A stretch of DNA of 64,000 nucleotides from positions 3,410,001-3,474,000 of the forward strand of contig NC_047015.1 in the NCBI RefSeq assembly GCF_902652985.1. The letters are read 5' to 3'. The notes under the pieces are model-generated. The model searched no databases. It had not been told where the DNA came from and was given only the letters and a program-made list of their open reading frames with translations. Positions 1 to 54,736 of this stretch are shown piece by piece (the first letter of the stretch is position 1; each line of letters starts with the position of its first letter). The position numbers and the translations under genes are program-made. This DNA is from Pecten maximus (Eukaryota).

Positions 1-133
1 ATTGAAAGGTTTCCTCCTGAATGTAACATATATTTCACCCGTATGACAGTATATTTCGATATCAATATCAATATTATGTCCAACTTGTGAAATATATGTT
101 ACATTCAACGGAAAGCCATTGAATATCCGCTAT
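1..133 (-). mobile_element. Terminal long hairpin of a Crypton-type non-autonomous element (body probably outside window)
   Basis: Imperfect inverted repeat GAATGTAACATATATTTCAC ... GTGAAATATATGTTACATTC. It ends in AATATCCGCTAT, whose reverse complement resembles the ATAGAGG start of the hairpin element at 28961. Confidence 0.5.
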
Positions 134-1303
134 TTTATCGCGGAGATCGCATGATTTCTCCTTTGTCTCTCCGCTTTATTTATTTTGTGTGTATCTTCGT
201 TAGACCACTTGTTCGTGACAACGTGTTTGTTTGTTAGTGAACGGCCACTCGGGTCATGCACGCGCAGCACACTTTGATCTCCGATTTTTTTATCCTTTGG
301 CGATATTTTGTTTGTTTTTTTTTTGAGATTTTTTTTCTATATTTCCGCTCAGGTTGACTTCATTAATTTGGTATTGTTGCAAGAAATGCCAAATTTTAAG
401 CTTTCGATGATATTCTCGCACATGAATGTTACGTCATATAAAACTTTAACATAACAGAATAAAAGTGAATGAATGCAATATTGGACTTTAGGCGATTACA
501 TTAATGCTTTAATTCATCCTTTATTAAACAATAGATAGATAAATGATGTCATTTGCAAATACCTGAGCAGTAGAACGTTTTGTTTGTGTGTTTTTTCTTT
601 CAAATATCAAAATTATCACCTTTTTGAAATTACATAGTATGTTGATTTGTTTGTGGGTTTTAAGCCTGTCATGTAGTTTTACATTGATTTAGGTGCCTGC
701 ATTTTAATCTATTGTATTTGGTTGACTTAATTATTTTTCTAAACTGACTATTCTCTGTTGAAAACTAAAAACACATCTTATTCGAATGATCATATCAAAA
801 CATACAACTTTTGTGCAGCGCGCTTAGCAATAATGCAACTGTAACATTTTAACCTATCATGAAATAAATAGAAATTGACAAAAGTAATTTTACACACATG
901 CAAATATTTTAATATTCGAGCTGTTCGAGATTACTTTTAACCGATTCGTTTTAAAAAATGATTAATAGTTTCTACTTTGTTATAGGATTTCCAAACGTCA
1001 TAATGCTGAAATTGACAGGTTATTGAGTTCGTTAAGTAAACTATTGTGATATTATTGAACATTGCATCTTGATACTCAATTTGCATTGAATATTTGAACG
1101 ATCATTTATGAAACTGGTATACAGGATTTTACTGTGTCAGAATTGTAGTTCCATGACAAGTTCAGATATGTAAATACATGAGAAATTTATTACAGTCTAT
1201 TGTGCCATTTATATATAAGTATAAATGGGTAAAATGAATATAGATATTCATTTTTTACACATGTTTGATTATTATGTATTATGTTGAGTGAAAGTATATT
1301 GTA

Positions 1304-1725
1304 TTTTATTATAAATTTATACTTTTTACACTTTCTGATAGGCTAAAACTTGGCCACATGGAGGTCAGTATTTTGTGATATTGACCTGATGTTTCTACTT
1401 TTAGAAACACCGAGTTAATATTGCGTTTATGACGTCATAATCACTGTGACGTCACAGTACACCTCTGTGAATTACATGCTTTATCAAGATAGATATAATG
1501 CAATTTGATTAAATGTCGTTGAAAAAATCATTCTCTTGTAGTCTGAATTTAGATAAAAAATGTCAATTTATAATAAAACTATTATTGCCTTTTGATTTCG
1601 GTCGATACATGGTTTTATCGACCTGAGAAAAAAATATCAACCTCGGACTTAGTCCTCTGTCGAATTTTTTTTTCAGGTTGATAAAACCATATATCGACCT
1701 CATCAAAAGGCTATAATTGTATAGT
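1304..1725 (-). mobile_element. Non-autonomous Crypton-type element (short IR ... short IR + long hairpin)
   Basis: TTTTATTATAAATT (1304-1317) and AATTTATAATAAAA (1565-1578) form an inverted pair. A ~140-nt hairpin (1581-1718) follows, with TC/TC mismatches that read GA/GA on the minus strand. Confidence 0.6.
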
Positions 1726-1947
1726 ATTGTATTCGTGCCGTATTTGTAGGTCTTTGTGGAATGTGCAAATATAGACGAATGTATGGAAACACAAATTGTC
1801 AGTGTTGACGTAATCTGAGCAACCGGTGACATGTACATGTAGGTAAAAGTATTACCTTTGACATACCGATATAGGGTATGTAGACATTCCAATGCTAAAA
1901 ATATATTTGGAAGTCATTTGACAAATAAATTGTATCCGTAATGGCTC

Positions 1948-4900
1948 ATGAGAATGGGTAACTCTTCTGCGGGTATCCTAATTGGGGTAGATCGCCGGTG
2001 GCTATCTTTAAATATACTTTCAATTGATTTCAAGATACTTTATGATGGCTTATATTTCTCTGTAATTCTTAATTATGTATCATCTCTATGTTTTGATAAT
2101 CTATCATTCATACTATTTTCACAACCTATTATTCTGCTGTTATGCAATGATGTTGAAAGTAATCCTGGTCCGTTTTATAATCTGAGCATGGTTCATCTAA
2201 ATGTTAGATCTATTAGAAACAAAACCTCCTTACTTGAAACCGAATTTGAAAGTAACGATATTGTATGCCTGACAGAAACACATTTCAAATGCATTCTTCA
2301 CTTCTTCTCCACACAGGAAAGATAGAACTACAGGCCCAGGGGGTGGGGTCATAATATACTATAAAAACACTGTCATTGTAAAAAGAAGAGCTGATCTTGA
2401 AAGGGACGATGTAGAACTGCTTTGGTCCGAGGTTTTGATTAATAATCATAAATTTCTTCTTGGTTGTTTATATAGACCTGACAGTAATATCGAATACTGG
2501 AACAAACTTGATGACACTTTAACTAGAGTCACTGATACTTCTATGGATGTTGTACTTACAGGTGATATTAATGTTAATATGCTAAATGTGCCACTAAATG
2601 ATCATTTCTCAAGACTCCTTATTAAACATAATCTATCTAGTCTTATTCTTGAACCTACACGAGTAACGCCTGTCAGTGCAACATCCATTGATATTATATT
2701 TACCAATAACAGTAACATAATTAGAAGCACCCATGTATCTCCACCATTCTGTAGTGACCATTCATCCGTCCATGCCCAAATTTCCTTTAACACATTTAAA
2801 CATATAAGCTATAAAAAAACTATTCTGATATATGATGAAGCTGATTTTGATAGTATGAATAATGCCATTTCTAATTATGACTGGTTAAATTTATCATTAA
2901 TTCAGGATACTGAGTCATTTAATGCCTCCATAATAAATTGTTTAACGGAACAGGTCAATAATTTTATCCCAACCAAAGAGATAACAGTACGACCGAATGA
3001 TAAACCATGGATAAATAACAACATTAGGCTTAAGATGAGGCAGAGAAACAGAATACACAAAAAGGTTAAAATAAATAATAATCCTCACTACTGGCAAAGA
3101 TTTCGCACCCTTAGAAATGAAACTATTGACCTGATCCGTGAAGCAAAGGCAAATTACATAAAAAAATTGAAAACTCTCTGAACGATAACTTGGTCTCCCC
3201 AGACAAATGGTGGTAGATAGCAAAATCTATCACTAACTTCTCTAATAAATCCTCCTCTATCCCCCCTCTTGAATTAAATAACCAGGTCATTCATCACCCA
3301 ATTGATAAAGCTGAAGTCCTGAACAATCACTTCACTAATATCTCTACTTCAACACCTAACCTTGAACTCCCCCAAACTGCACAAAACTTCACTAACACAT
3401 ATTCAAGTCACTGAACAAGATGTCTCTGATCAAATTAACATTCTTAATGCTAATAAGCCACCAGGCCCTGATGGCGTTATTCCAAAAATTGTTAAAAAAC
3501 TGAACTCTTCTCTCTAAAACTACCACTTACACTATTATTTAATAAATCTTTAGAATCAGGGATTGTACCTAATAGTTGGAAACAAGCAAATATTAATGCT
3601 ATTTACAAAGGAAATGGTTCTACTAATGATGTCCTAAATTACAGACCTATATCAATAACTTCTTGTTTTAGTAAATTGATGGAAAAAGTTGTTTTTAAAT
3701 ATCTTCATAATTACCTTGTTGAAAACTCTATTATAACTAAGCATCAGTCTGGATTTACACCAGGTGACTCTACAGTCAATCAGTTATTATTCATATATAA
3801 TGAAATTGTTAGTAATATGGATCAGGGAAAGGAGTTAAGGTTTGTATTTTGTGACATCAGTAAAGCCTTTGACCGAGTTTGGCACCAAGGTCTTCTTCAA
3901 AAACTAAAAAATTATGGAATTGATGGAAATTTACTTGTCTGGATTCAAAGTTATCTTACAGATAGATTACAAAGAGTTAGCACTGAAGGTTATTTCTCTC
4001 AATTCAAGGTTATTAATGCAGGGGTTCCTCAGGGATCTGTTCTTGGCCCACTTCTCTTTCTTCTTTACATAAATAATATCACAGAAAATGTTAATACTAA
4101 TATTAAGCGTTTTGCAGATGATACTTCCCTTTACATAATTATTGATGAAAACCCCGCTCAAGCTGCACAAGCACTAACCTCTGACCTTGCTAACATTAGT
4201 GAATGGGCAAACATATTGGACATCAAATTTAACCCCAATAAAACTAAATCAGTCATATTTTCAAGGAAACAAGACACAAATCACCCAACATTAACATTTC
4301 AAAACAGCTAGATTACTGACACTACATCACATACACACCTAGGGCTCACCCTTAAAGATGATGCATCATGGAGACAACATATTCAGAACATATATGAAAA
4401 AGCATACAGCAGACTTAACATTCTTCGATATATAAAAACAAAAGTCAATCGAAAATTTACACTGCTTTTATTAGGCCAATATTAGAATACGCTGACATTG
4501 TTTGGGACAACTGCACACAACAATCTGCCGATCTTCTGGAATTAATACAATTAGAAGCAGCAAGAATCATCACAGGCCTTCGTTCTGGCACTTCACATAT
4601 TAAACTGTATACGGAACTTGGTTGGGAAACTCTGGCTGCCAGAAGAATGAAACATAAACATATTATGATGTATAAACTAATGCATGGACTCGCACCGCAA
4701 TATTTACAAGATATATTGATTCCATTTACTAACAATCCTAATGATAATACTTATCCTCTCCGACACATCAGACTTTTTAACCCACCTTTATGCAGAACTA
4801 ATAGCTACATTGATAGTTTCTTCCCGTCTATGTGCCGCACAGCTAACAACACAGATCCTAACTACTCTGATTATCCCTCACTTGCAAGCTTTAAACATAA

Positions 4901-5940
4901 ACTAAATAATAATAACACATTGGAAATTGAATCTGTCAAAATCTTTAAAACTGAAGGAAACAGAAGGGCGAACATAATTTTAACTCAGCTTAGAAATTAT
5001 TGCAGTGATCTAAATTTTGATTTAAACCAGGACCATTTAACAGACAATCCTTTATGTAATTGTTCAGATGACCGTGAAACAGTTTCTCATTTTTTTCTAG
5101 ATTGTCCTCTACATAATGATTTGCGGATAAATTTGTTTACTTCCCTCAATAATTTTAATATTGACCATAACCATATTTGTATTAACATTATTTTTAATGG
5201 ATGTCCTAGTTGTGATGGAAATATTAACAGAGTAATACTTAATGATGTCCAAAATTTTATAGGAAAATCTCATCGTTTTAACTTATATAACTTATAACTT
5301 ATATAAGATCTAGAAAGCCATCATACTGTTCATCTTGAAAAATACTACTTCTTAATGAAATTAATACTTTTTAACTTAAGTTAAATATCATATATATATA
5401 TGAACCCAGTGGAACATAGCTGATATTTATTTATGTATTAAAATATACTTGCATTGATTTTAGTTCCTGTTTTCTATATATTAAATCAGTGTGTGAATAA
5501 AGCCATTAACTACAGTATTATTAAAATTACATAAATTATATGCATAGAAAATTCCTATACAGTTCAGGTGGTGTTGACCTGTGCAATATAGGCACATGGA
5601 CTTTTGGTCTAGCCACCTGTTACTGTCTCTATATTAATTAACTTTGATGTCTACAATTGTTTATTTATTTCATTCGGAACTGAATCACTGTTATATTTGT
5701 TTATATTTATATTAAAGTGTGTATGTGTGTGTGCAAGTGCTTTATGTAACATATTCTGTGTTTATCTTGTGTTGAAAAATAGTTATTTCCCTTAATTCCT
5801 TTGTTTATATTATGTAGTTCATTTCAAAATATTTAGACCAATTAATTTGAAAGATTGTAATTATATTTGATCACTCAATCCACCATGGAAAGAATTTATA
5901 TAGGCTTGCCTGTTATTCGATCCAATTGATATTAACATCA
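1948..5940 (+). mobile_element. Degenerate CR1/L2-group LINE (APE endonuclease + reverse transcriptase + C-terminal CCHC-like knuckle)
   Basis: APE motifs HLNVRSI, CLTETH, GDIN and SDH. RT motifs FCDISKAFDRV, GVPQGSVLGP and FADD. C-terminal CNC...ETVSHFFLDC. The coding region is split by stops and frameshifts into ORFs 1948-2325, 2435-3181, 3676-4311 and 4647-5297. The 3' UTR end is approximate. Confidence 0.92.
2149..2172 (+). other. 2A-like (StopGo) ribosome-skipping motif DVESNPGP upstream of the LINE APE domain
   Basis: ILLLCNDVESNPGP matches the D(V/I)ExNPGP consensus with a Leu-rich upstream segment. Confidence 0.8.
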
Positions 5941-12875: not shown

Positions 12876-13139
12876 GGCGAAAAAGTGAAAAAGCGAAAAA
12901 GCGAAAAAATACCGCGAAAAAGCGCCGGATTGTAGGACGAAAACGTTTTCGCTTTTTCGCGTGCATTTTGTCGCTTTGTCACTTTTTCGCTATTTCGCTA
13001 TTTCGCTATTTCGCTTTTTCGTGTTAGTTTAACGCGAAAAAGCGAAATTTTAACATTAGATTTTCGCTTTTTCGCGGTTTTTCCATGGCGAAAAAGCGAA
13101 AAAGCGAAAAAGCGAAAATGGCACAAATCAGCCACCATA
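12876..13139 (-). mobile_element. Terminus of the IS3EU-type element with subterminal GCGAAAAA repeats
   Basis: The minus strand begins TATGGTGGCTGATTTGTGCC, matching TAY-type IS3EU termini. Many direct and inverted GCGAAAAA/TTTTCGC repeats follow, ~300 bp upstream of the transposase ATG. Confidence 0.65.
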
Positions 13140-13665: not shown

Positions 13666-14394
13666 AAGAGTCTTCTGGCATAAATGTTACTCAACCTTCC
13701 ATTTGATAAGACTCTTATTTGAGGTATCTACCAAAATCAAAAGATACTATAAATGATCATACCCATTTTTGGCAAGTTTGCACACAAATTTCATTTACTT
13801 TATGGTTCAATCTAATTAAAATTAGACTTGTAATTTCCGTTCTCCTACGATACACTGCAATACAAGATCTAACAACACCTCTTAGGAGGTCATCTCAGCA
13901 TGACATTTGAGCTTAAAATATAAGCCAATGATAACTGTTCAATGACATCATCAGTCAACCAATGACAAACAGCCTCATACGAGCCTTCGGTTGCGTCTCC
14001 TTAGTATTGAAGACTCAAATCAGCGCTTGATTTGTAATACGCAAAATTTCACAAACATTATTGGTAGACTACTCCAATGGCTACGATAATAAAAAAAAGT
14101 TGCTAATCCTCTGGACGTTACATTGAAAGAAGAACAGGAAACGATTAGGCCTATATATTGTCTTGTCGACAGGACGGACTGTGTTGCCAACTGGATTTTG
14201 AAAACCGTTACCATACACGTTATTCCCTTTCAAACTAACTTTTTACACGACGCTGCTGTCTTCACTCTCTCTGTCTCTGTCTCTGTCTCTTACTCGCAAA
14301 ACCATGCTTATGGGGAATTAGGCAAACTCCGTGGTTATGGGGAGTGGCATTTCCCGCTTCATTACCGCTTCAAGGATAACACTTATTAATTCCA

Positions 14395-14646
14395 ATCTGA
14401 TTGTATACTATTCTTCCTGTTACTAAATTATTCAGTAAAATGAATCAACAGGATTTGTTCCCTTTGTTTGAAAATAAAATGTTGTTTATAAAGAAAAGTG
14501 TTTATCAAATGATGTATCAAACTATAAACCCATATCTCTCACATCATGTTTTGGAAAAATTATAGGGAAATATATCTAAATAACAATGGCATATAATGCC
14601 TTGGCCAGTTCACAGCAGCGAATCATTTGACAGAGTGTGGCATGAG

Positions 14647-14698
<52 letters not shown>

Positions 14699-15659
14699 AC
14701 TCGCAATACCATGCCTATGGGGAATATAATTAGACGTTTGACCAACATTGTGGGTAATAATCGGTTTTATGGGGATTCCTCTGATTCCCCATAAATCCAA
14801 GCACTATTTGAAAAGAATCCGGATGCGAAAATGTGTAAGTTGCCGCCAAAAGTTGAAAATGTGCTATTTTTAGAACAACTAGCAAACATTCTCTCACACT
14901 GCCGTAGAAGTGGGCTTGAATGATTATGGGTAATATTCCCCACAAGACGACTTTATAGAGAGATAATTACGACTTCCCCACAAACCTAATAGCAGTGATA
15001 ATTATTCCCCATAAATAGGCATATTAAGAGAGAAACCTAAGTATACATCCCTATTAAAGCACAGAATGAGAATATTTAACATACCACCCCCCCCCCCCCC
15101 CCCCAGCCCCCAACCATCCCCACCCCCTCCCCCAACATACACACTCACAAGAATGTGAATATGCCGGGCTGGGAGGGGGAGGGGGGTGGGGGTGGGGGTG
15201 GAGGGTCGTTCACTCCCTTCGAGCAGTGATTTGACCTGAACAGTGGGTTGGGAAACCCCAGATGGGGAATTCCTTCCTGTTTGCACCTCGCGCATTAATT
15301 ACTATACACATTCTATTTTTAATAGGAACGTATGTATTTGTTTTCCGAATCTTTAGCTATAACTCTTCATTCTTGTATCAATGAAGAACCTAATTCAAAC
15401 GTTAATTCCTCAAATAAATCCACACAAACATCAGCAGATTATAACTTTAAGGAACTTGGTTCAGGTGAAACACCACCTCATTGGCCGATAAGTTTATTCT
15501 TTTCCCGCCAAAATTTAAAATCATTTTTTTTTTATAATTTAAATGGTTTCTGTTCAATACTCTGACACATACTGACTGGATAATTAGCACACACACAGAA
15601 CTTCATTTATTGGCAGCTACTTAAGAAATGTGTTGAGTGAAACCGTCAAATCTAGCGCA
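14395..15659 (-). other. ~1.27 kb inversion in copy 1 relative to copy 2, flanked by a 39-bp inverted duplication
   Basis: ORFs at 15002-15295(-) and 15332-15565(+) correspond to 37961-38203(+) and 37688-37924(-). Segment 14356-14394 is the reverse complement of 15660-15698. Confidence 0.92.
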
Positions 15660-16249
15660 TGGAATTAATAAGTGTTATCCTTGAAGCGGTAATGAAGCAA
15701 TCTGATATCTTGTTGTATTATTGTTTTGTTTTCGATAGAATATGGAGGACTATTTATGATGTCTTTTAAAGGAAATGACTGCAGACAAATGCATGTATCA
15801 ACAGCATTAAATATGGTAGTTGTCAGAAAATCACACGTCAATTGTTAGTAGTGGTAATACATCAGTAGTTTTTCTTTCCTTTCAGTAATAGCCTTAATAA
15901 TTCCCAGTAGGTTTTAGGGATTGATTTACTTTTTACCAGAATAGAGTCTATACTTTTACGTTACTTATTTATTCGATACGGAATTCCCTAGCAACTGTCT
16001 CTGATAACGGGGTACAGTTTTCCTCGGAGGAATTTGGCCATAAAACATTTCAATTCGTACCACCCGCTATCAAACGGTAAAAAAAAACAAAGGTTTGTCC
16101 AAACCCTTCAAGGAGGTGGCCAATGAAAAGACCGTTCCTTACGACAAAAACTCTGTGTATGCTTATTTCGATACAAAACAATATCACATTATCTAACCAA
16201 TGAAACGTCCGCTTAGCTCCTATTTGGACGGAATTTCGGGACAAAGGTG

Positions 16250-24750: not shown

Positions 24751-24752
24751 TT

Positions 24753-25399: not shown

Positions 25400-25473
25400 T
25401 TTGTTATATCGTTTTCTATGCCATTTCAGATGTTGGTGTACTCCCTTTCTTCTCTCCTGAGATTTTTTTCTAT

Positions 25474-27927: not shown

Positions 27928-27963
<36 letters not shown>

Positions 27964-32582: not shown

Positions 32583-32873
32583 ACACATTATACAGAAGAA
32601 TAAATTTATCAATATCAGTGGTACACATTATACCGAATAATAAATTTATCAATATCAGTGGTACACATTATACCGAATAATAAATTTATCAATATAAGTG
32701 GTACACATTAAACAGAAGAATAAATTTATCAATATTATGGGTACACATTATAAAGAAGAATTATCAATATTAGTGGTACACATTATACAGAAGAATAAAT
32801 TTATCAATACTAGAGGTACACATAAAACAGAAGAATAAATTTATCAGTACGAGTGGTACACATTATATAGAAG
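32583..32873. repeat. 40-bp minisatellite, right part (same unit as 27485-27832)
   Basis: ACACATTATACAGAAGAATAAATTTATCAATATCAGTGGT repeats, ~7 copies, more diverged than the left part. Confidence 0.95.
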
Positions 32874-38557: not shown

Positions 38558-38593
<36 letters not shown>

Positions 38594-41500
38594 AAATGAT
38601 TCGCTGCTGTGAGCTGGCCAAGGCATTATATGCTAATGTTATTTAGATATATTTCCCTACAATTTTTCCAAAACATGATGTGAGAGATATGGGTTTATAG
38701 TTTGATACATCATTTGATAAACACTTTTCTTTATAAACAACATTTTATTTTCAAACAAAAGGAACAAACCCTGTTGATTCGTTTTACTGAATAATTTAGT
38801 AACAGGAAGAATAGTATACAATCAGACAATCTGATATCTTGTTGTGGTATTGTTTTGTTTTCCATAGAATATGGAGGACTATTTATGATGTCTTTTAAAG
38901 GAAATGACTGCAGACAAATGCATGTATCAACAGCATTAAATATGGTAGTTGTCAGAAAATCACACGTCAATTGTTAGTAGTGGTAATACATCAGTAGTTT
39001 TTCTTCCTTTCAGTAATAGCCTTAATAATTCCCAGTAGGTTTTACTTTTTACCAGAATAGAGTCTATACTTTTACGTTACTTATTTATTCGATACGGAAT
39101 TCCCTAGCAACTGTCTCTGATAACGGGGTACAGTTTTCCTCGGAGGAATTTGGCCATAAAACATTTCAATTCGTCTCCGTACCACCCGCTATCAAACGGT
39201 CAAAAACAAAGGTTTGTCCAAACCCTTCAAGGAGTTGGCCAATGAAAAGACCGTTCCTTACGACAAAAACTCTGTGTATGCTTATTTCGATACAAAACAA
39301 TATCACATTATCTAACCAATGAAACGTCCGCTTAGCTCCTATTTGGACGGAATTTCGGGACAAAGGTGAACATTATGAACCAGATGTATCTAGTAAGACA
39401 CCCGCTCGTATGCAATTATCTAAGCTTACAGGGAACATTGTTCGTTCGCTGTCTCCTGGACAGAATGTCAACGTTTTTTGGTCCAAGTGTTATCGAAAGT
39501 AAAACTGGAACACTATCGTACAAGGTCAAGGTCGGAAAGGGAACCTTGTGGGGACACCGCCGAGTCCGACGGAAGCAGTAGCAACACTGGAACTATTATT
39601 TTCAGTTTACACAAACAATACTTATGTTCCTCTTGGTCAGTTCCAGAACACCCAAACCCAAGTTAAATGTACACAGAAGGTGACATCCGTCCCTAGTAGT
39701 AGAATCGGACCCAGAACCATAACTCTACAGCTGTCTCAACAGGTAGGACCTCGATATCCTAGGAGGGAGGACAGACAGGCTCCAACAAAACTGAACTTGT
39801 ACATAAAGTTTTCCGCGAATTCTGTCGTTAGTTATTGATTACACTGTGGTCACTGGCATAATGATCCCTGTGTAATCAATCAGACTCGGGTTCTGTAGTT
39901 AGGTGATTCTCTGAGTGTATTATTGTTAGGTTTTTTCAACATGCGATTACGTTTTAAGTTCGATAATGTTTAGTGCCCGTTAAACTTTTTTAGTTAACAG
40001 TCAAGTTTAGTAGTCATTTCACTGCAGAGACAGTACCTAGCAGCATTTATGTGAAAATTCATATCATGTACAATAGACAAATGATTACAAGACTTTTATT
40101 TCAAAAATTGTGAACTTTACTTGGAGTCTAAGAACTTGGATGTCCAATTCTAGTAACAACAAAGTTTTGACAGGGAGGATTATCGTGTATGTTCTTAATT
40201 ATACACATTAAAGCAACTATGATTGTTAAAATCACTGATAGAAAATATTACCAGATGTAATATTTCTAAAGAACAAATTTAAGACTTTCCCTAATTTACA
40301 AAAATTAAAAGAGTTCGCAACCGTACAGAACATTACAATTCGGTAGGGCCTACAAGAATGTTATGGTATCGCTCATTAGCAGAATGCCGTGTACCATTCT
40401 TTACAAGCAACCAAATTAAACGGCGTTTTTAAACTCAAGAACATGCAGCAGTGTCCATTTTTCGTCGGTATAGGCTCGTGCATAGGAATATCTTGAACTC
40501 CTGTCACTATTTATATGAAGAAATCTTCATTTGTAGTCGTTTTAATGAGTACGAAATCTTCAGTTATAGTCGCTTTAATGAGTACGAAATCTACAGTTAT
40601 AGTCGCTTTAATACAGCTGTAGTAAGTAGGATACTGATCACCATGAATAACATGATGTTTCTAATTGTACATCAGACTTTGTTATTGTCCGTACCCATTT
40701 GTGTACAATAGCTATCCTTGTAATATTGTATTCATTAGACTAAGAGTGACCACTTAGTCTCACCGATTTCGTCGAAACAAAAGATTTTTTGTTTGGAAGT
40801 TAAAACATATTTTGACAATTTTTGTGCAATGCTTCAACATAGTTAATATACTTGGTATGTATAATTCGATCTGCTGGGATGGGAAGAAGGCTATCTTTAT
40901 TAAATCTCTTTCACTACGTTATACTATGATAACATGCAACTTTGGTTTTTTGTTGCATCGAATATCATACACTATCATAAAGGGATACTTAGTCGTGTAG
41001 TTATATTAATAAATCCTTTCGTTGTTTTCCGAGAATTACAAGGGCTGCTTTTTGAAAACATGCATGATTCATGCTTATCAACAGAAGACATCATGTCAGC
41101 GCACACGCAGCTTTGTTAAAAGTCTGCAGATAATCGATATTCAAATGCTCTTTTCCAATTGCAGACCAGCAGCGAACACCAAAACGAAAACAGAGACTCA
41201 GAAATCTACTGTGGTTGGCTGACAAAATATATCCGATTAAAGGGAGCTCAGTATTAACCAAAACCCCCGACATCCGGGGGAAAGGAATTGCTGGATCCCC
41301 TGTCCACGGTAAGTTGTGTGATGTACAGTCAGACAGAGACTCGGTTTGTGTGTGGATTCTTGTGTCCTATCGATCATTATAGTGTGTACAATGTTGTTAT
41401 ATTGGTACCAGCAGAGGTATCTGTGTCTGGTCAGTACTATGCTAAATCGGACCGATCAGAATTTGATTATATAACTATAATGGCTTTGTAAATCAAGAAT

Positions 41501-44500
41501 GTAATGTCAGTTGAAAGCAAACAGTTATCATGCAAATTCGATCGAAGATACCACATCATTCTAACCTAAGTTGACATTGGTCTGTAATGCAATCTAGGAT
41601 GCAAAGCTGACATTTTATTGATCTGTCAGTTTGGAGCTAAATTGGTACGCAAATATTGATATAGTTTATCAACATCCACAAAGCACTTGGTTATACGATG
41701 CTGTTTCCACATATGTGTGAGGCTTGAGGTATTTACCGAAATGGACCGAACCTGACTTGGAATTACCGAGACGGAAAAAATAGTGGCTTATATTGGCATT
41801 ATTGTCAGAGAATGGACCTAAATACTGTATCAATTTTATCAAATGTAAAGTATTAGGGGATTTATTTGACCGAGAAGTATTTGTAGCATGGAAATATATT
41901 TCACGCTTGATCTACATGTTATTTTTGGTTTAGTGAATTACAAGTTAGGTGTATTTATATATTGGGAGCTGTGTGTATTAAAGGTGTGTGTATTAGCGGT
42001 TCGTTTGTGAGAATGTTGTGTAGTCTCGGATCTCTGTATTGATGCTAGGCCTGCCGTATCATCTTTCACTCCGGACTTATATAAACAGCGACTCGTATCC
42101 AAGGAAACGCTACATATTTCGCGATTCGCGGCCCGATGGCCATGATGCATCAGAGTTGAATTAACCAAATGGACGATAAAATACCTGAAATCTACATTTG
42201 ACGAGAGAATGGACCCAATTTGTTGGTATGGTTCCGGCCCATCTGACGGATTAATCATCACTTTTGGTTCAACAGGACAAGGATGTGTGTTGCTACTCGC
42301 AGATTAACTGTGTGTGTTATTTCTATTCCCCGTCTGTCTTTTGTTACAAGTTCGATATGTCCAGTATATTAACCATCTCTGGATTTATCTCATATTCTTC
42401 AAACCCAAACCCCATTCTTTGTTTCTGGATTGACGTTACTACATTTATAAATGCTTCTCTGTCATTTTCATCAACATAATTACGAAATCATCGTCGGCAT
42501 GGTCATTAACCTGCGCGTCACACTGGACGGTGAGTGCTTGTTTGAATTTCTGTTGAATTTTTCGAAAACTGTGCTGGTGAAATCTGTGTGCAAACGATAT
42601 ATTTCAATCAAAAATTTCTCGTAAAAACTGGTCTATACGGCATCGAATTATGTAACTGGAATGCTACTGTCCTATGTCTTCATAGTTTAGACTCCCAGAA
42701 GCATCTTCCAGATTCTTCTCAGTTATATATCAACAGAAGACTACGAGATTGTAATAAGTTTCGCTTACACTAACGGCATATTTATAAACAGTGTGAATAA
42801 CAGGATATTTGTCACAAACACTAAGTTTATTTGGAGACAAGATGTACTCACATATTAGATATGCTTAATTCTGTCAGCTAAGCTGAAAGATTCTTTGAAA
42901 ATACTATCCCCTCCCCAACCCATATATACCTATAGATAATTCTCTAAATTTACCGGATCAACAGGGATCCATACCATGAATAAAATGTCAACGCACTCGC
43001 TTTCGCAATTGTGCGCATGTGGTTCAACGTTGCGTCCCATTCTGTTCTGCATAAGTGTATAATCTAATTTCGTTAGTTACACAAATTTTGATTGGTTTGA
43101 AAATTAAGGTTATTTCCGCATAGACCAAAACAAAGCAAAAGGCCAAAGCAACAACAAAAAATGAGACTAGAAGCGTTTCAAGTTAATTTCCAAAGTAATA
43201 GACTACCACATTTATAACTTGAACTCAAAGAGATCTCAATTGCACATTTTAACTACACAGACCAGGAATTGAACCTTGATCCCTCGGACATAAGGTCTGA
43301 GAACTCTACATTGAGCTACCCATTTCAAATGTATATACAATTGAAACTTCTTTTTGTTACTCAATTTTAGTTAAATGTAATTTTATTCAAACGCCAATTT
43401 TATCGCGATTTTCGGTCGGCAAAAACCTGTTGGGTGAGAAATTAGAACATTAGTTTTATTACAGTAATTGAAAACGATCTACACGAAACACATTGTCGTC
43501 GGAAAGTATTGCAAATATGACTAATTAAAGCAATGTTGCTTGGATTTACAATGTATCTAGGTCCCAACTGACCAAACGTCAATGTCACTGAGTCAAATGT
43601 CCAAGATACAATTTTATATCTTTTCACTGATGAACATTTCGTAATTAAAGTTTAAAGCAATTTTGGCCAGAATTGATCCAGGAGTCAAATGACCGAAGGT
43701 CAGGGTCATTGGATCAAAGGCCAAGGTCACATTTTGTATGTTTTCACTAATGAACGTTTCTTTATTACACTGTGAATGAATGTGGATTTTGGAGTGAACT
43801 GATGATAGGTCAAGGTAACTGGATCAAATGCCAAGTTCTGGTATCAAGGTAAAATTTTGTATCTTTTCATTGATGAACATTTTGTTATGACATGATGAAG
43901 GAAAGATGTTCATAATTATACAAGGAGTCATTGATGCAAGATCTAGGTCTCTGGATCGAGGGTCAAATTTGTATATTTACACTGAAGAAAATTATGTTAT
44001 GACACCTTAACCACTCGGCCACTTCGGTACCTTTCACAATACTGGTCAACATTAATCATAGAACCAACCGATCAAAGGTCAAGGTCTCGTTTCAGGTCAA
44101 ATTTTATATCGTTTCATTGATGAAAATTAGCCGAAATTAAACAAGTAATCAATGGATCTTATGTCAAGGCCACTGAGTCAATGTTATGGTCAAATTTTGT
44201 ATCTTTTTAGTGATGAACATTTTTGGTATTATTAAGAAGCAATGTTGGTTAGAACTATACAAGGTGTCAACTAACCAAATGTCAATGTCACGGGGTTGAA
44301 AGGTCCAAGGTCAATGCCAGGTTTAGTATTTTCACTGATGAACAATTAGTTATGGCACTATGAAGCAAAATAGGTGTAAATCAAAGTCACTGGATTATAG
44401 TTTGGTTTTTGGACTATCGCCCTGTGAACTGTGAATAGATAGGGTTATACTGAGGCGGGGTTTCCATGTAGTAACTGGTGACTATCGCACTGAACAACAT

Positions 44501-45945: not shown

Positions 45946-48797
45946 TAAAACAAAACACAGTCGCCTGTTGCTTTACTATGTCTTCTCTTTACGAAATACT
46001 TGCCTTACATCTCATACCTTTATTGTAACGATTCTGAAGGTGATTACACAAAAAATCGCAAGCTGTATAACTTTCTCGGTCCTCATGGACTGTCAGGCTA
46101 TCGCTGTACTGACATACTAAAACATCGGAACATTATGCTATTCATACAATACAGCGATTAAACCAAACAGGTTCTGATTATAATCCACTCGCAATAGGTC
46201 GATTGGTAGTGAGCATTGTGTAAGGTATAATAGATTCGACGTATTATTTACATGAAACCTTTATTAGTTGAATTGATATATATATATACATGTATTTCTG
46301 TTTAACTGTGTAGTCGAAAACTTTCAAGCTATTGAAATTATTCTGTGTATAAGCAGCAAGCAGAATTTGCTGTGCGGGGCCTCATAATGGAAAATGTAGA
46401 CCAAAAACTAACAAGCCAGTGCTGTATGTATTGTCAGCTTAAGAACTATAACATTAGACCAGATATTGTTTGAGTTGCATACGGACATTTTAACAGTAGT
46501 AGACATCGGCACCACAATGGTCAAAAGTTGACGATGTGCTGACATTTGGCATTTGTTGTAGGAGTCTATATGGCCTGGCCACGTCAATCTGGTGGAGGAG
46601 TTCCTAAGAAGGGTGAATATATAACGATACTGCATGTCAAACGGATCTGTCACTGACATAGATAATTGTTATATTGGTTAACTTGTTTATATGTATAGTT
46701 GCTATACACGGCTAGATAGCACGCCTAATCAAACAGTCGATTTTGTATTCAGAGGGGTATTTATTTCCTTGTTGTATTCTACGTGACGACGCTATTGTCC
46801 TCATCAATACATGAAGTGAAGCATTTTGTTGTTTTTGCTCCATTATTACGGTTTTTGTGACTAAACGTAACATGACATTGAATCCATGCGATCCCTACAA
46901 ATACCAACTACAAATCTAATGTTTCAGTGAGAGAGAATGATCAACTGCCCAGAATGATGACGAAAACGGACGAGGTAGAATACTTCTGAATCATCGCCAA
47001 GGTAATGTACTCATAATTACATACTGTACGCTTGGAGTGTGTGATTGAGTTGACGTTTAACTTCTCACACAATTATCAAAGGTTTTCTTTTTTAAAGATA
47101 AGCGAGACAAAAGTTTTTTAATCGGCAGCATTAAGCTCATGATGGTAAGGTCTCCCCTATACTAAGAAATACTAATTGTATAGCAGCGGTTATAATTCCC
47201 AGGTAAGGATATAATGTGTACAGATAGTATTTTGGTTTTAGAGATCGCTGTTTTCAATCAAATAGTAAATTGATCGTCGTGAAGTTTGTCCTTTTTAGCA
47301 GACCTTCGTTACAAATGTATGAATAATAGGATAGACATTAAGAAAGCATAACTTCTGGATTTTAATTTGAAGAGGTAAATCATTATAATTAGTTACATAT
47401 GTAAGTGAATGTAGTAATTGCAAGGTACCCGGTGGTAGGATTAGAGGTTTAAAACCCAATGCGTATCTGTGTTAACGGAAATCACTGAGTTTCTGTCTTA
47501 TTCTGATCTTAAAGATTCATTGTTTAGATTGGTAATAATGAGGAATAAGTTCATAGAGTCATATTACCCTATTTTTGTGTGAAATCAAATGTCTTTTGAT
47601 TAAAGCAACAAATCGTAATCAAACTAATAAATAATTTGGTGATATTGGATAAGACAGGATTTGACGATAATAATCCATTGGCAACTTTTATTTGAATTTC
47701 CTAAAAGGTGTCACGTTCTATGTTTTGAGATCAGTCATCTGACTAGAATGGTCAACATACCTATTGCCATCATGCTTTGTTCGTCATGTGCCGAAAGCTG
47801 TTTTTATTTCCAAACACCACACCTGAAAATCAAATTTCAACCATAGGTCTTAACTTCTTGGGAGAGGATATTTTTCTTAACAAATTGAGACTGGATCGAC
47901 CTCTTTGGGACAGAGGGGCGGGGCTCCAATAGGAAACATAGTTTACATTTCGCTTTAAACGTCACTCCCCTTGATGTCTGAGTGGATCACAGCCTGAAAC
48001 ATATGAAACATCTGAACCATCACTGAGGAGATCAATAATTCCTTAAATAAATGTTCTGGTTCCACCCCTAGGTACAGCCATTTCTTAAATAAGTAAGCAC
48101 AAAATAGTTTATTGTATGTATAACTTAGTGTCTTCAATTTGTTTTATTTGTTTGCTAAAGACTAAAAGAGAGAAAACAATCAGTTGGTTGAAAAAGCTCA
48201 GAAATTAGTGGCATACGTCGTGTCCATGTGACGTCTCCCAAGTGAATGGGTTTGTAGTCAACGCGGTTTCAGCGTTTTATTGATTTAGGACGCAGTATAT
48301 AAGACATGTAAAACAGTTTATAATGCATGAAAAAACGATATAAAAGAAATGTAAAAACCGTATATAAAACATGTAAACGTACATAGGACATGTAAAAACC
48401 GTATATAAGACACGTATAAACCGTATGTAAGACATGTAAATGCGAATTTAAGAAATGTAAAGCTGTTTATAAGAAATGCAAAAACCGCATATCGACGAAG
48501 ACGGATCTTTCTATCAAGGACGGAACAGGCGTAATAAGAAAATTGAAATACTTTAAAGAAAAAATGTTTTGTATCATTGAGCAGGACATCTTTTCACTCA
48601 TGCATAACTCCACATATCTGACCCTGTCCCTACTATCTCTCGATTAGCTATTACATGTGCACGGCTTTTACAGTGCACTATAAACTATTTCATAATAAAA
48701 AAACAATTTATATGAACTCAGAAGCTTTAAAATTTGTCAGTAATATACTTCAATCGGGTTGTTTATTATTATTTTTATCTTTTTTTTCAGAAACGAA

Positions 48798-50651
48798 ATG
48801 CTTCGAGCAGTAGCTTTCAGGAATTTTTTATGCTTTGAGGATCATCAGTCACTGGGATTTCAGAATGGTCCTAATTTCATTGTTGGTGCGAACGCAACGG
48901 GGAAAAGTGCCATTTTTGAACTGATAAGACGATGTTTGTCAAGAACTGCAAGCAGTTCAGATTCGAGCGTAACAGACAAAAGTAAAGACGCTTTCGTTAT
49001 TTGCAAATTTAAAGTCAGAGAGGAACTATTGGACAAAGTGCCTGCGGGATGTACGCTTTATTCTCTCTATGTAAAGTATTTGATAGGTGGAAACGAGGAC
49101 AAACACAAACTTGTTTGCATTACAAACGAAGAGGAAACACATGCTGAATACTATCTTGATTGTTATGATGGTTTAAAAGCCACTTTAAAAGGAGATAAAA
49201 AAGACGTATTAGAAGCAATGAAAAGTCTTATTACGAAAGGCAGCGATACAAATCAACACCTTAAAACAATCAGTAGTATGATTCCTGGAGTGACTGAACG
49301 AGGTACTGAAGAGGCTCTCTCTGACTGTGAAGCTGTACTCAAGGAACTACACGACGTTGTTGTCGTCACGTTCCCAATACGTTCTCCTGGACCGATACAG
49401 TGGAGCCATTCTAAAAATATTGGCGAAGGAAATGAGCATTACGTTACAGCTTCCAACAATGCTGAGATACTTCAGCGGCTTATAGGATCTAAATATGTCA
49501 ATGAAGAAATGTCGGAAGACATATTCCAGACAATCATCAACCCATTGAAATACACCTTCCAAAAACATAAAAAGGATCATGATTCAATCATAACTGTTAA
49601 TGATGGCCAGAGGTTAATACAATTACTCAAAGTTCCAGAAGGGATTATCGAAGCAAAGCAGTTTTCCTTGATGTTTGCACACAAGAAATTTCAAACATTA
49701 ATGTTGGAGGAACCTGATAGAGCAATGCATCCTCAAATGATTCAGAAGATGCGGGACAAATCGATCAGGGGATGCAAGGACCAGAAGACGCTAATATTAA
49801 CTTCACACCAGCCAGTGATGCTTAACCGATGGACCATGTCCCGATTGTATGTTTGCAGAAAGAAGAGGGTTGTCAGCGGTAACTTCAAACACTTCATTTA
49901 TAACTGGGGTAAAGATGTCAAAAATACCCACCAACACCAGGACCAGCTGAAACAAATGTTGTACTCTGCAGCTGTACTGTTTGTTGAAGGTATTACAGAC
50001 AAATCGGTCATTGGATGGGTATTCGATCGTGTTTTAGATACCGACTTTAAAGATCTGACTGACTTTGCCAAAGAGGAGCTGGCAGAATTGAAAGAAATAA
50101 TTGCTGGGACTCAAATCATTTCCATGGAAGGGGGAAAAGGATATCAGCACTTAACACAAGTGGCAGAAGATTTGGAAGTACCATTTGTGTTCCTGCTTGA
50201 TGCTGATATAGTATTCAAATATCCGAAAGATGTTCAGCAACGGAAAGAAATTAACACTGTTTATGATACGTTTACGAAAGAATCCAGTAAAAATGTAAAC
50301 GTGGCATCGATCATGGATTTGCTGTCAAAGTGTGAGTTAGATGCATATGCAGCAAAAAACTTTGATTTGCCGCCAGACAGCAAAGACTTTAAAGCCACCA
50401 AAGACTGCTTGAAAGAAAAGAAAAATATTTTTATTTGGGATTCTAGGAACCTAGAGGTAATGATTTTAAAAAGTATCGTAGATATCAGAGATCAGTTGAT
50501 AGATAAGAACATGATTGGGTTTTTGAAAAAAAAATCTGCGCTCTTAGAAATGGACATGGAAACGGCTGGAACACTTGTGGAATGTCTGTTGAAAGGTGAG
50601 GAAATGAGAGTGTTTTTAAAATTCCTGTTAAAAACACGAATGCAGCCTTAA
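48798..50651 (+). CDS. OLD-family ATP-dependent nuclease (ABC/SMC-type ATPase + TOPRIM; P2 Old / GajA-like), 617 aa, intronless CDS
   Basis: N-terminus MLRAVAFRNFLCF. Walker A GANATGKS (48885-48908). Walker B/D-loop LMLEEPDRAMHPQ (from 49698). H-loop ILTSHQP. TOPRIM VLFVEGITD (E at 49986), DxD LLDAD (50199-50207) and a distal NLE (E at 50454). A polypyrimidine tract + CAG acceptor ends at 48790. Confidence 0.9.
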   Translation: MLRAVAFRNFLCFEDHQSLGFQNGPNFIVGANATGKSAIFELIRRCLSRTASSSDSSVTDKSKDAFVICKFKVREELLDKVPAGCTLYSLYVKYLIGGNEDKHKLVCITNEEETHAEYYLDCYDGLKATLKGDKKDVLEAMKSLITKGSDTNQHLKTISSMIPGVTERGTEEALSDCEAVLKELHDVVVVTFPIRSPGPIQWSHSKNIGEGNEHYVTASNNAEILQRLIGSKYVNEEMSEDIFQTIINPLKYTFQKHKKDHDSIITVNDGQRLIQLLKVPEGIIEAKQFSLMFAHKKFQTLMLEEPDRAMHPQMIQKMRDKSIRGCKDQKTLILTSHQPVMLNRWTMSRLYVCRKKRVVSGNFKHFIYNWGKDVKNTHQHQDQLKQMLYSAAVLFVEGITDKSVIGWVFDRVLDTDFKDLTDFAKEELAELKEIIAGTQIISMEGGKGYQHLTQVAEDLEVPFVFLLDADIVFKYPKDVQQRKEINTVYDTFTKESSKNVNVASIMDLLSKCELDAYAAKNFDLPPDSKDFKATKDCLKEKKNIFIWDSRNLEVMILKSIVDIRDQLIDKNMIGFLKKKSALLEMDMETAGTLVECLLKGEEMRVFLKFLLKTRMQP

Positions 50652-53519
50652 TATTATAGATAGGAAAATGTATAGTTATATCCGCTTCTCTGTATTGAAG
50701 AAATATGAGACTTATTAAAGGATTAAGAACATTCTAAAACGAGTATGAATATGGAAAAACAATAGACAGATACCGGCATCTAAAAAGATAATCTACAAGT
50801 CATCATTTAATCATCGACGGGAAAGTATACGTTATCATCACACTGACTACGAAATAATAGTACATTTTGTACGTATTACGTTAATACCAAAATTATCAGC
50901 TATGTTCTCATACTTGATTGCTAATTTTTGTGGTTTCTAATCCCCTGTCCGGGATAGAAATTAGTCTACTAGAAAGGCACAATTAATTGTAGAAGATCTT
51001 ATCAATGTTTCGGTGCACAGTTATCGTATCCTTCTCTATAAGTGACAGCTACAACATGTTGTTGTGCTTCGTGATTATTTGTTGTACATGTTTAGTAAAT
51101 ATTGATTCTGTTTATAGAAAATAATATTTTTGACTTGGGCTTCTATTGTGTCATAAGGTAAATCCTCTCATTTAAACTATAAAGTTGTGTATTTCCTGTC
51201 CAAAAACTAAAATTTTAGTTAAGGTATCGCATGAGCAACTACTAATTTCAATTGTAGTATACATGTATTTTGTAATGTTTTGTCTATTCCGTCTAATAAG
51301 AAATTGACCGAGAAAATCCGGAGTTTGAAGACATTACAAACAATCGTCAGCCAATGCCTTATACATTTGTACAGTCATTATTGATCTATCACACTGCTTT
51401 TACTTGTTCCCGACGACTGAGGCTCGCTGGAAATTTGAAATATCATTCTGCCTGTGTTACATTAACATCAATTGCGCCATACAATAATAAATGTAGGTAA
51501 TATGTTCTTAATGATGTTAATTATTAAACATACTTTCGATATGATTTTTTTCCCCATTTTACTTTCAAAATCAAGTAATCATGATTGGACAAGATATCAG
51601 TTTATCGATTTATAGAACGAAAATCTACCTAGGTAAGTGTACACTTTGTTCTTAAAACAAGAGAGAAATGTTCATATATGAAGAGTACCATATTACAGTA
51701 ACAGTTTATATCATCTCTTAAAATCATAGTTCATACATTAGGAATGTAAATAAGAAAACAAACAATTGTTTAGTGTTTCAGATAAGTGTGTATCTCTGAA
51801 TATTTCAAATTTGCCTGGAGGTCTGTTTGTTTTGGGATTGTAGTGTTTCTCCTGAAATTTGATTCAATTCCAACATGTAAATTTACCAAGTTCACGTTTT
51901 ACTTATGTAATTCGATAGAACTGTGTTTTTTTTTGTGTTTTGTTTTGTTTGTTGTGTGTTCTTCTTTTGATTATATAATGAATATAATGCTATGACATTG
52001 AGTATGTGTAGTAACTTGTGTAAATCAATATATCTTTTTATTTTCTATTTTACTTTAGATGTTATTTTGATTTAAGATGTTATATTTTTAATTCTGTACA
52101 TTTTTCTACATTGTTTGTGTAATAACTTATTCAAATTAATATAACTATTTATTTTCATTTTTACTTGAGATGTTATTTTCATTTATATGTTCTATTTTTA
52201 CTTCTGTTTTATTTATATTTCATTTTGATATTTTATCTTGTATTCGCATAATTAGTATTCATGCATGTGTTCATTTGAAAATGAACGTAATAATATACAT
52301 TCAGTATAGTTATATTTGTTTGCATTGTAGCGCCAGGTTTATTGGCATTACATTTCTTCAAACAATGAACATACATTACGAATACATTATTTTGTATATT
52401 ACAAAATATTATTACAATAATTTAGATAAGTTTCAGGTTATTTTCTTTTTAATTAACACATTTGTTAGCTTTGGAAAGTACCTTGTTTAACACCAGCGTT
52501 CCATTATCATTATTATGATTACCTTTGAACAGAAATGATCAGTCAGGTGTTCTCAGTTATCTTATATTTTCTGCAAGGGTCCTGATCGTGAAAAACCAAT
52601 TTTGTCGTAACATCTTTTGAAAATAATGTGCCGTATTCTGTAATTTGTTTTTACGCTTTGGTTTTGTAAACACATGGTAGTGTTTTAACTTGCCTTTTGT
52701 GACACCTGTGTCCTCATTATGATTTTTTTTTTTTCAAATTTTACTTTGCATAAACTGTGATAACGTTAGCACTGTGATACTATATATTTATGGCATATTT
52801 ATACTGTTGTTTAATTATATAACATACAAAACTAATGTGAGTAGGTATAATAAAAGATCACGGTATGTATTTTATCGATATCTGACCCAAATAATGGGGT
52901 CCGATACGTCATCTACACATAAACTGATGACGTATCGGAATGTGCTATTCTCTACTTGTACAACTATTGTTGTATATGGGGGATATATGAGTGTACAGAG
53001 GGTATTAGAGGATATGGTTATGTTAGCTTGGTATTAATTTGTTCATTAACATTTAATTATGTTCACAAATCATTTGTTGGGTCATTATGACGTATATTTA
53101 GAAGAATGTTTCCATATAAATACGTCTATCAATGAAATTCCATTTTTGATTGACCATAATTATCAAAGCAAAACATTTTCAAAAAAACAAAAAAAAAACA
53201 AAAAAATCCAGAGTCAGAAGCTTCATTAAAATAAAGAAGTAACAACAATCACCATATCTATTTTCTTGTTCATTGGTTTTAATTCCTAATCCAGCCTGGT
53301 GCATTCTACAATGTACTGTATCGACTTTTTATGATGTCTTTGTGGATTGTAATGATGATATGTTTGAAACTGATTTATTTGTTTTGCAATAACTGAAGCA
53401 AGAGGTTTTAAATCAACATAAGGTTGAAAGTAATATATTTTTCTTTACGCATAATTCCGATAAGCTTCCTTCGGAATACATATCATCATACGTTGACGTT
53501 GTAATAGATGGAAGTTTAT

Positions 53520-53835
53520 CGTCATAAGTTTGATGAAGTGGATATATGTAATGATACTTAATTGAGAGGATACGTGTTGTATCATACCTTGATTAAGTGG
53601 ATACATGCAATCATACCTTGAATAAGTGGATAGATGTAACGATACCTTGATTAAATGGATACATGTTATCATACCTTGAATAAGTGGATAGATGTAACAA
53701 TACCTTGATTAAGTGGATACATGTTATCATACCTTGATTAAGTGGATACATGTAATCATACCTTGATTAAGTGGATACATGTAATCATACCTTGATTAAG
53801 TGGATATATATAATGATACCTTGATTAATTTAATA
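53520..53835. repeat. 29-bp minisatellite
   Basis: Unit TACCTTGATTAAGTGGATACATGTAATCA, ~10 copies. Confidence 0.93.
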
Positions 53836-54160
53836 CATGTAATGATACCTTGATGTTGTTATTCATATAGGCAGAAGTCCCTCGTCATAAAAACCTATTG
53901 ATATATGTTCAAATAAAGTCCTAGAGTTTTATTAGAATTCATTTTTAAGGGAAGACTTTCCTGATCAGTAATTTACCTTTCCCACCTGTTACTTTGTTTA
54001 ATGAATAGTTAAGTTACAAACAGTTTCTTTAAAAAATCAATTCCATAATGATTTTTGTATTGAGTATCAAATATATTTTTGTTAACCTAGAATACCTTAT
54101 TGATATGTTATTTGATATCCAATTTCTGTTATAAATAGCTTTAAAATTTACTCTACTATT

Positions 54161-54736
54161 TAACAAATATTGCATGGCACTGAGGGCAATATGGGAGTTT
54201 ATGGACTGGTCAGTCACCCAAATATATGTATATGGACCGAAGCGAAGCTGAGGTCCATATACATATATTTGGGTGACTGACCAGTCCATAAACTCCCATA
54301 TTGCCCGAAGTGACATGCAATATTTGTTATATTATACCGAATATGACCAACATGACATGGAAAAAATAAACAACAAGTTGTTCTTAATCATTAAACATTT
54401 AATTTGAAACAAACAAAACGATGCAAAAATACAGGGTGTTCCTTACTGCGTATTTAGTTGCTTGTTTGGTATTGATGGAGTCCTTCGCATCGGTTATCGA
54501 AACAAGTTCGGTTTCGTCCAAGGACGCAAATCTATCACTGCCAGACGCCATTTCGCTCAGTGTCTGAAATGATGACGTCATAATATGACGACGTCAACTT
54601 GGTATTATGACGTCATTTTCATATAGCGTCGGCCCGGAGTCAAGGACTTCGGCCCTTGACTCCGGGCCATATACTATATATGGACCGGAGCAACTACTAG
54701 ACTCAAATAGGCACTTAAATGAATGAGGTATAATAT
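54161..54736 (+). mobile_element. Internally deleted Crypton derivative (hairpin + IRs + YR N-terminal remnant)
   Basis: Hairpin 54161-54329 with loop GCGAAGC (54242-54248). ATATTATACC (54329-54338) pairs with GGTATAATAT (54727-54736). The minus-strand peptide MASGSDRFASLDETEL...SINTKQATKYAV (from 54551) resembles exon 1 of the YR at 29612. Confidence 0.78.

Follow-up and report, generated by a model that had tools for sequence, protein, structure and literature searches.

A 64,000-nt stretch of the Pecten maximus genome (NC_047015.1; the window, in whose coordinates all positions are given here) contains an autonomous DNA transposon of the CryptonA type, which carries one tyrosine recombinase (YR) gene and ends in a long imperfect hairpin, together with several families of shorter elements that have hairpins of their own. 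All of these families are CryptonA-type DNA transposons or short non-autonomous derivatives, and the hairpin is part of the mobile unit, since full-length copies, deletion derivatives and empty sites all place it inside the inserted segment; a preliminary description of the window had taken the elements for Cryptons with hairpins, and these comparisons bear it out. We propose that the hairpin works as folded single-stranded DNA (ssDNA) of one specific strand, a reading to which we assign a probability of about 0.5. This role is suggested by the kind of mismatches and apex that the hairpins carry, by the context of these motifs and by their fixed polarity. The anatomy of the elements, their recent activity and their conservation in other bivalves are matters of direct observation.

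The autonomous CryptonA element and its terminal hairpin

Using tblastn with P0001, a 496-aa Pecten maximus protein, we placed the YR gene on the + strand in two exons, at 29612-29924 and 30206-31383. The second exon holds the DUF3504 and Phage_integrase regions, both matched in Pfam by the open reading frame (ORF) at 30280-31380, and the best protein match of the YR is an uncharacterised 496-aa Pecten maximus protein at 99% identity. The intron is spliced out in transcripts, since a 1276-nt contig from an RNA-type run (X9) joins 29570-29924 to 30206-31124. The catalytic positions are R253, H380, R383, H406 and Y415 (P0001 numbering); among 12 homologues the last four are invariant and R253 is kept in at least 90%, and a weak match to a solved integrase spans the H-x-x-R...Y box. 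The preliminary description had counted two elements with a YR, whereas tblastn with 117 homologues finds a single YR in the window and no second one. The segments at 19973-20243 and 43059-43341 were rejected as further YR candidates, as they match merely the first 76 bp of the Crypton and a tRNA-like segment borne by its intron. This ~95-120-nt segment, which resembles a short interspersed nuclear element, lies at 29975-30093 in the Crypton and recurs at 20139-20243 and 43225-43341, in a duplicated region.

The element itself spans 29466-31821 (2356 bp), with the YR gene on the + strand, so that the strand on which the hairpin comes first is the - strand. Its limits were set by copy boundaries and empty sites. 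A genome search with 28800-32000 recovered four further near-identical copies, all spanning 29466-31821; many deletion derivatives of ~0.9 kb (about 20) retain 29466-29691 and 31115-31821, i.e. both ends. At a paralogous locus on another chromosome (L038) the sequence passes directly from 29465 to about 31823, which makes it an empty site, and in contigs of a second individual (run X6) 29465 is followed by a single T and then by 31823, within the window's own flanks. The end far from the hairpin is a terminal inverted repeat, ATAATTTTA (29466-29474, +), which provides the first base of homology in every Crypton copy; it is the reverse complement of, and pairs with, an inverted repeat immediately inside the hairpin, TAAAATTAT (31657-31665, +), and the - strand of the Crypton terminates in ...AAAATTAT. 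The hairpin at 31665-31820 (-) has 66-nt arms that are 97% complementary; on the - strand it shows the apex GACGC-GAA-GCGTC, a 3-nt bulge on the 3' arm and the base TAAGCATT. Because of the shared copy ends and the empty sites, we assign this hairpin to the Crypton as its own terminus, downstream of the gene. The 2356-bp unit comprises one two-exon gene; reverse transcriptase and long terminal or split repeats, the marks of DIRS and Ngaro elements, are absent from it, and no other ORF with a family match was found within 29466-31821.

The Crypton of the window was recently active, its insertion being missing from the paralogue and from the other individual's contigs. In addition, a segmental duplicate of 24300-32000 on another chromosome (G000:C9:42485332-42491449), with 96-98% identity, has two hairpin elements of this region, here called H2 and H3, and no Crypton; the insertion of the Crypton thus postdates the duplication. 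H3 is a truncated copy at 28957-29121 (+) with a hairpin at 28978-29121 (66-nt arms, 94% complementary), in which CAC-GA-GTA faces TAC-GA-GTG, and the Crypton is inserted 345 bp to its right. Contigs with H3 diverge to the left of 28956-28961 and have one shared continuation beyond 29116. The hairpin at 28978-29121 is a separate, older element into which the Crypton later inserted. Summed contig depth over 28900-29127, which is not copy number, is ~1000x that of neighbouring stretches in two DNA runs, so that H3 probably ranks with the commonest repeats of the genome.

The separate nature of the 28978 hairpin, and the fact that hairpin elements do insert at each other's ends, could be taken to mean that all of the hairpins are independent palindromic miniature elements that tend to land beside Cryptons. 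This explanation is contradicted by the empty-site comparison, in which the hairpin at 31665-31820 arrived with the gene. The Crypton deletion derivatives retain the same hairpin, a hairpin stands in the same position in seven other species, and we consider an independent origin extremely improbable.

YR homologues with 42-55% identity were found in these seven species, namely Mytilus californianus, Pinctada imbricata, Argopecten irradians, Solemya velum, Mercenaria mercenaria, Mya arenaria and Saccostrea cucullata (two copies), and in all of them a hairpin of 130-210 nt starts 150-790 bp after the YR gene. The base of the hairpin keeps the sequence T-TAAG-N-A-(A/T)-TGA, or one close to it. 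In Pecten, Mytilus, Pinctada, Solemya and Mercenaria the repeat next to the hairpin has its partner on the other side of the gene, 146-1650 bp before the start codon. Read antisense to the gene, the apex is CCGC-GAA-GC(G/T)G in Mytilus, Pinctada and Saccostrea, and that of Argopecten is CCGC-GTA-GCGG; with Pecten, five families have a GCG-N-AGC apex in this orientation. The same five share a bulge of 2-3 nt on the 3' arm, ~9-12 bp below the apex. At one further locus (L073) no clear hairpin was found downstream of the YR, and the hairpin at a Gigantopelta locus is only 92 nt long and lies 1.1 kb away.

Helentron derivatives are reported to be abundant in bivalves, which would favour mobilisation of the elements in trans by a Helitron2/Helentron rolling-circle Rep-helicase, with the YR gene as a passenger. 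The layout of the elements also matches the description of Helitron2 (PMC3627910), a likeness that the preliminary description had not taken into account. Against such a passenger role, the autonomous copy encodes a YR only, and the arrangement of gene and hairpin is kept at 42-55% protein identity across seven other species, which implies selection on the YR within the element. Moreover, the hairpins are 130-210 nt long and terminal, and not short structures set 20-30 bp in from the end; insertion is at TAT and not between two Ts; and the stabilising motifs described below are found on the strand that has the hairpin on its 5' and not its 3' side. Mobilisation of the Helitron2 type is very improbable in our view and, like a chance association of hairpins with Cryptons, poorly supported.

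Hairpin families of the window: layout and insertion sites

On the hairpin-first strand, antisense to the YR gene, the elements follow one layout: a T, an imperfect hairpin of 130-200 nt, an inverted repeat of 9-16 nt, a body, and a partner repeat ending in TAT or AAT. This layout is common to the Crypton, to the families that we call H5, H2 and H1, and to a ~380-bp family from fetched loci. The families are unrelated in sequence, and their inner repeats are alike (TATTATACC, TTTATTATACC, TTTATTATAAATT, TATAATTTTA). The preliminary description had proposed such a shared design of hairpin, inverted repeat and partner repeat, which we recover in the YR element and in the families at 54160, 24750 and 1304-1728, with one more family now added. 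Its five hairpins are present at 1578-1720, 24753-24898, 28978-29121, 31665-31820 and 54158-54332. Of its two partial hairpins one is real, a decayed and unstranded copy at 1-124 (76% complementary) that is related to a GA/GA-rich family at L011:519-650; the other, near 13630, turned out to be merely a short GAA-containing stretch. It had further held that structure rather than sequence is conserved, which is apt for the sequence-unrelated families that share the design and too strong for the comparison across species, where hairpin base, adjacent repeat and apex are conserved in sequence as well. A palindrome of GCGAAA(A)A repeats at 12993-13117 is unrelated to the terminal hairpins.

The H5 family is represented by a non-autonomous element at 54160-54736 (+), with a hairpin at 54158-54332 (86-nt arms, 93% complementary), an inner repeat at 54328-54337 and its partner at 54727-54736; the target TAT at 54157-54159 precedes the element. 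H5 has at least 40 genomic matches, many of them 100% identical, and internal deletions are present among them. The H2 element at 24750-25400 (+), also non-autonomous, has its hairpin at 24753-24898, with the apex GGC-GAA-GCC, its inner repeat at 24900-24909 and the partner at 25390-25399, and at least 35 genomic copies with 80-92% identity have the same boundaries. H1 is an old copy with approximate outer limits of 1304-1728 (-), in which the hairpin lies at 1578-1720, a 14-nt inner repeat at 1564-1577 and the partner at 1304-1317. In the young relatives of H1 (L061-L064) the hairpin stands at the terminus, and the apex reads C-GA-G / GGAC-GAA-GTCC / C-GA-G. Non-autonomous Cryptons appear to be very abundant in the scallop.

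The elements insert directly behind a TAT-like triplet, as we tabulated for independent insertions of H5 (n = 26) and of the Crypton (n = 20). The three preceding bases are T, A and T in 26, 24 and 22 of the H5 insertions and in 16, 17 and 12 of the Crypton insertions, respectively, and the base that follows the element is variable in both sets. No target-site duplication longer than one ambiguous T was found in the tabulated insertions; long flanking 'duplications' were rejected as pre-existing minisatellite arrays. Many insertions lie within minisatellites. The possibility that minisatellites are parts of the elements, as Helentron-derived arrays, is excluded by copy boundaries, which stop short of the arrays, at 54736 and about 25400. 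One and the same minisatellite unit of 40 bp occurs at 27485-27832 and at 32583-32874, on both sides of the region with H3 and the Crypton, and these two may therefore sit inside one former array. Further arrays were seen at 25473-26851 (32 bp x 44), 55645-56138, 56660-57302 and 57637-58039.

Elements of this type also insert at one another. Four insertions, three of the Crypton and one of H5, coincide with the 3' terminus of the ~380-bp family or fall within a few bases of it, in one case exactly head to tail, and in Mytilus the far end of a Crypton abuts the hairpin of another element. In Argopecten irradians (L067:4001-9682) a stretch of less than 5 kb holds two YR genes and two identical hairpins in tandem, separated by a 318-aa gene that is unannotated; this locus is an end-to-end array of Crypton copies.

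Strand-specific motifs and the proposed role of one folded strand

The sequence GCGAAGC forms the exact apex of three hairpins, at 24822 and 54242 on the + strand and at 31741 as its complement on the - strand, and these are the three loops that had been described. On both strands of the window GCGAAGC occurs five times, against about 2.2 expected, and three of the five are hairpin apices. Among tandem 2x2 mismatches from ten hairpin families, 10 of 14 are GA/GA, two are GA/AA, one is GA/CA, one is TT/CC and none is TC/TC, and all ten GA/GA pairs have a pyrimidine-GA-purine context. When perfect palindromes were mutated at random in simulation, 0.12 GA/GA-or-TC/TC mismatches were expected per set, with a maximum of 3 in 20,000 trials; the view that the mismatches are non-random holds up in this comparison. 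GA had been said to face GA in four hairpins of the window. It does so at 28978, 54158 (twice) and 1578; the hairpin at 24753 has GA/AA and all-purine 3x3 internal loops. An apical module, in which a G+C-rich stem of 4-5 bp is closed by a GNA loop and flanked by GA on either side, recurs in H5, in the young H1 relatives and in three more families, c5, c15 and c8.

For the Crypton, H5, H2, H1, H3 and c8, orientation was fixed independently through copy boundaries, paired repeats or loose ends, and in each of them the purine-rich features lie on the hairpin-first strand. The orientable families with GA/GA pairs (H5, H1, H3 and c8) have all six of these pairs on that strand. The strand polarity put forward in the preliminary description is thus found in every oriented family, and the GCG-N-AGC apex is antisense to the gene in five bivalve families, with Mercenaria reversed. 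Its assumption that such motifs are stable in folded ssDNA agrees with the literature on the GNA triloop and on tandem GA/GA between a pyrimidine and a purine: GCGNAGC mini-hairpins melt near 76 C, pyrimidine-loop variants being far weaker (PMC13037366), and tandem sheared G:A pairs form in pyrimidine-GA-purine blocks (PMC10085684).

Copies within families vary in a way that bears on these motifs. The stems of Crypton-family copies contain compensatory double changes, of which some are confined to one copy, and the apex of 13 aligned copies is GAA in nine, AAA in one, altered by a duplication in one and flipped in two; GAA is thus found in nine of the 11 copies counted as retaining the apex. 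The H5 apex has one orientation in 26 of 26 distinct insertions examined. Rolling-hairpin replication of the parvovirus or poxvirus-like kind was rejected on these counts, since neither is half and half, and the uniform orientation of the apex argues against flip-flop replication. Both GA/GA pairs of H5 are kept in all young copies; in two older ones, a double change within one arm has turned one GA/GA into Watson-Crick pairing. This pattern suggests that dead copies undergo arm-to-arm correction and that the active lineage retains the mismatches.

From these features we propose the following route. The hairpin-first strand would fold, with its apex forming a GCG-N-AGC mini-hairpin and its tandem mismatches forming sheared G.A pairs. 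The two short repeats would then pair and stack on the hairpin base, and so bring both ends of the element side by side. The recombinase would exchange that one strand only, releasing or inserting it, and replication would complete the move in a copy-out style; the apex may in addition help to hold the strand in its fold or serve as a primer for the second strand. A one-strand folded route of this kind would explain both the replicative spread of the elements and their end-to-end arrays. We suggest, more tentatively, that bivalve CryptonA elements may be the first eukaryotic tyrosine-recombinase transposons that move via strand-specific folded ssDNA, and so a counterpart of integron attC and CTX-phage recombination.

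Several points weigh against a folded-strand role. We infer every mechanistic step beyond the anatomy, and the same palindrome would also be present in a double-stranded circle, where it could act. The polarity has its exceptions: two Pecten Crypton copies, both diverged or decayed, have a flipped apex, Mercenaria has its GAA-type apex on the sense strand, and the hairpins of Solemya and Mya are without a GNA apex. The YR-bearing hairpins carry few GA/GA pairs, and the GA/GA-rich families c5 and c15 are without a fixed orientation, the candidate partner repeat of c5 lying inside a later H5 insertion. The Pecten maximus motif counts cover no more than 282 kb of the genome. Finally, DNA folding energies from ViennaRNA differ by 0-4 kcal/mol between the two strands, with inconsistent sign; they are uninformative here, since the parameter set is without terms for mini-hairpins or sheared G.A pairs.

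The main rival is a conventional cycle of double-stranded DNA (dsDNA), in which the Crypton would be excised as a circle and the joined repeats and hairpin would form a long palindrome for recombinase binding or cruciform formation, with apex and mismatches tuning extrusion or limiting the instability of the palindrome. Published Crypton models have a dsDNA circle with short direct repeats as substrates (PMC3212892), to which the TAT before the element and the TAT at its end would fit; no circle junction appeared among the assembled contigs of public runs placed on the window. The joined ends of the circle would come close to an inverted copy of the internal boundary of hairpin and repeat, the base motif and the repeat are conserved in sequence in the manner of protein-binding sites, and insertion at the ends of resident elements fits ordinary site-specific recombination. 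A duplex site, however, leaves unexplained why the mismatches are GA/GA in a sheared-pair context, and why GA/GA and the GNA apex stay on one particular strand in different families and species. In a cruciform the opposite strand would bear destabilising TC/TC, and dozens of identical short derivatives suggest replicative rather than cut-and-paste spread. We judge the dsDNA circle to be rather unlikely on balance.

The hairpin might instead serve a later step or a side function and not recombination, such as priming of the complementary strand, protection from nucleases, or termination or regulation of transcripts. Mini-hairpins of the GCGAAGC type are known at priming sites of single-stranded phages, which GCGNAGC mini-hairpins mark (PMC13037366), and the hairpin always lies downstream of the YR gene. 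We find such a function improbable, as the hairpin base is the terminus of the element, is conserved in sequence and is kept by all gene-less derivatives, and RNA of the sense strand would have the unstable pyrimidine versions of the motifs. Folding of one specific strand as a recombination substrate is the reading that we retain.

Three further features of the window were noted. An intact ORF of 630 aa at 48759-50651 (+) encodes an AAA_15/AAA_21 ATPase with an OLD-like TOPRIM domain, that is, a nuclease of the prokaryotic OLD/Gabija-like type in an animal genome. Fragments of a non-LTR (long terminal repeat) retrotransposon lie at 2435-5297 (+), where three broken ORFs match endonuclease/exonuclease/phosphatase, RVT_1 and zf-RVT. 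A large direct duplication joins 14111-21278 and 37264-44364, which are 96-100% identical and about 23.1 kb apart; one block of it is inverted (14396-15698 vs 37555-38826), and long poly-G/poly-C runs stand at the breakpoints.

Comparison with known transposons and recombination systems

To our knowledge, Cryptons are the least understood class of eukaryotic DNA transposons, with ends that have been called featureless and with no transposition intermediate seen. The termini defined here offer concrete substrates for a first biochemistry of Crypton recombinases, namely the hairpin base, the paired repeats, the TAT context, the GNA apex and the G.A pairs. The hairpin structure is also a practical signature for finding non-autonomous Cryptons, which are among the most active elements in oysters (bioRxiv 10.64898/2026.02.10.705023). 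If ssDNA is the substrate, a mode of recombination known only from bacteria (integrons and CTX phage) would extend to animals, and the hairpin site may offer a compact, structure-specific recombination tool.

The scallop elements resemble Crypton and CryptonA transposons (Goodwin 2003; PMC3212892) in their single YR gene with R-H-R-Y and a DUF3504-type region, in having neither reverse transcriptase nor target duplication, in a short sequence that precedes the element and recurs at its end, and in non-autonomous derivatives that far outnumber autonomous copies. They differ by the 130-200-nt terminal hairpin, the paired repeats of 9-16 nt and the strand-specific ssDNA motifs. Animal Cryptons have been described as elements without terminal repeats, direct or inverted (PMC3212892; PMC13465315). 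This absence is the published description of Cryptons, not their definition, and the scallop elements depart from it. A full-text search of the literature, with Repbase and Dfam outside its scope, found no description of Crypton hairpins, and the terminal hairpin looks undescribed.

The IS200/IS605 elements of bacteria and archaea move by 'peel and paste' with an HUH Y1 transposase and short hairpins. The scallop elements share with them hairpins at or near the terminus, insertion on the 3' side of a short specific sequence, which is not duplicated, and an expected strand specificity, and differ in that their only gene is a YR and not an HUH Y1 transposase. The likeness to Helitron2/Helentron (PMC3627910) lies in the asymmetric terminal inverted repeats, a short one at one terminus and its partner immediately upstream of a hairpin at the other terminus; there, however, the enzyme is a Rep (HUH)-helicase rather than a YR, and insertion is between T and T rather than at TAT, while the scallop hairpin is ~10x longer and reaches the end of the element.

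Closer in enzymology are the strand-biased circularising integrative elements of Vibrio (PMC9345347) and the CTX phage with XerCD, which are YR systems with exchange of one strand or a folded single-strand substrate, completed by replication. Both are prokaryotic; the Vibrio elements are without a long terminal hairpin, and CTX phage uses host recombinases. The attC sites of integrons and their integrase IntI (PMC2727003, PMC3458562) are likewise a YR system, in which, as we propose for the scallop, an imperfect palindrome would fold from one strand. Asymmetric features could set the choice of strand in both, extrahelical bases in attC and the bulge and G.A pairs in the scallop, and both accumulate end to end. 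Integrons differ in being prokaryotic, in their other integrase clade and attI platform, and in sites of 57-141 nt with a box consensus of their own. The scallop hairpins, which the preliminary description had likened to attC sites, are not attC in the family sense: the hairpin, a putative ssDNA substrate, is the terminus of a transposon that carries its own DUF3504-type recombinase, a eukaryotic Crypton YR encoded inside the element.

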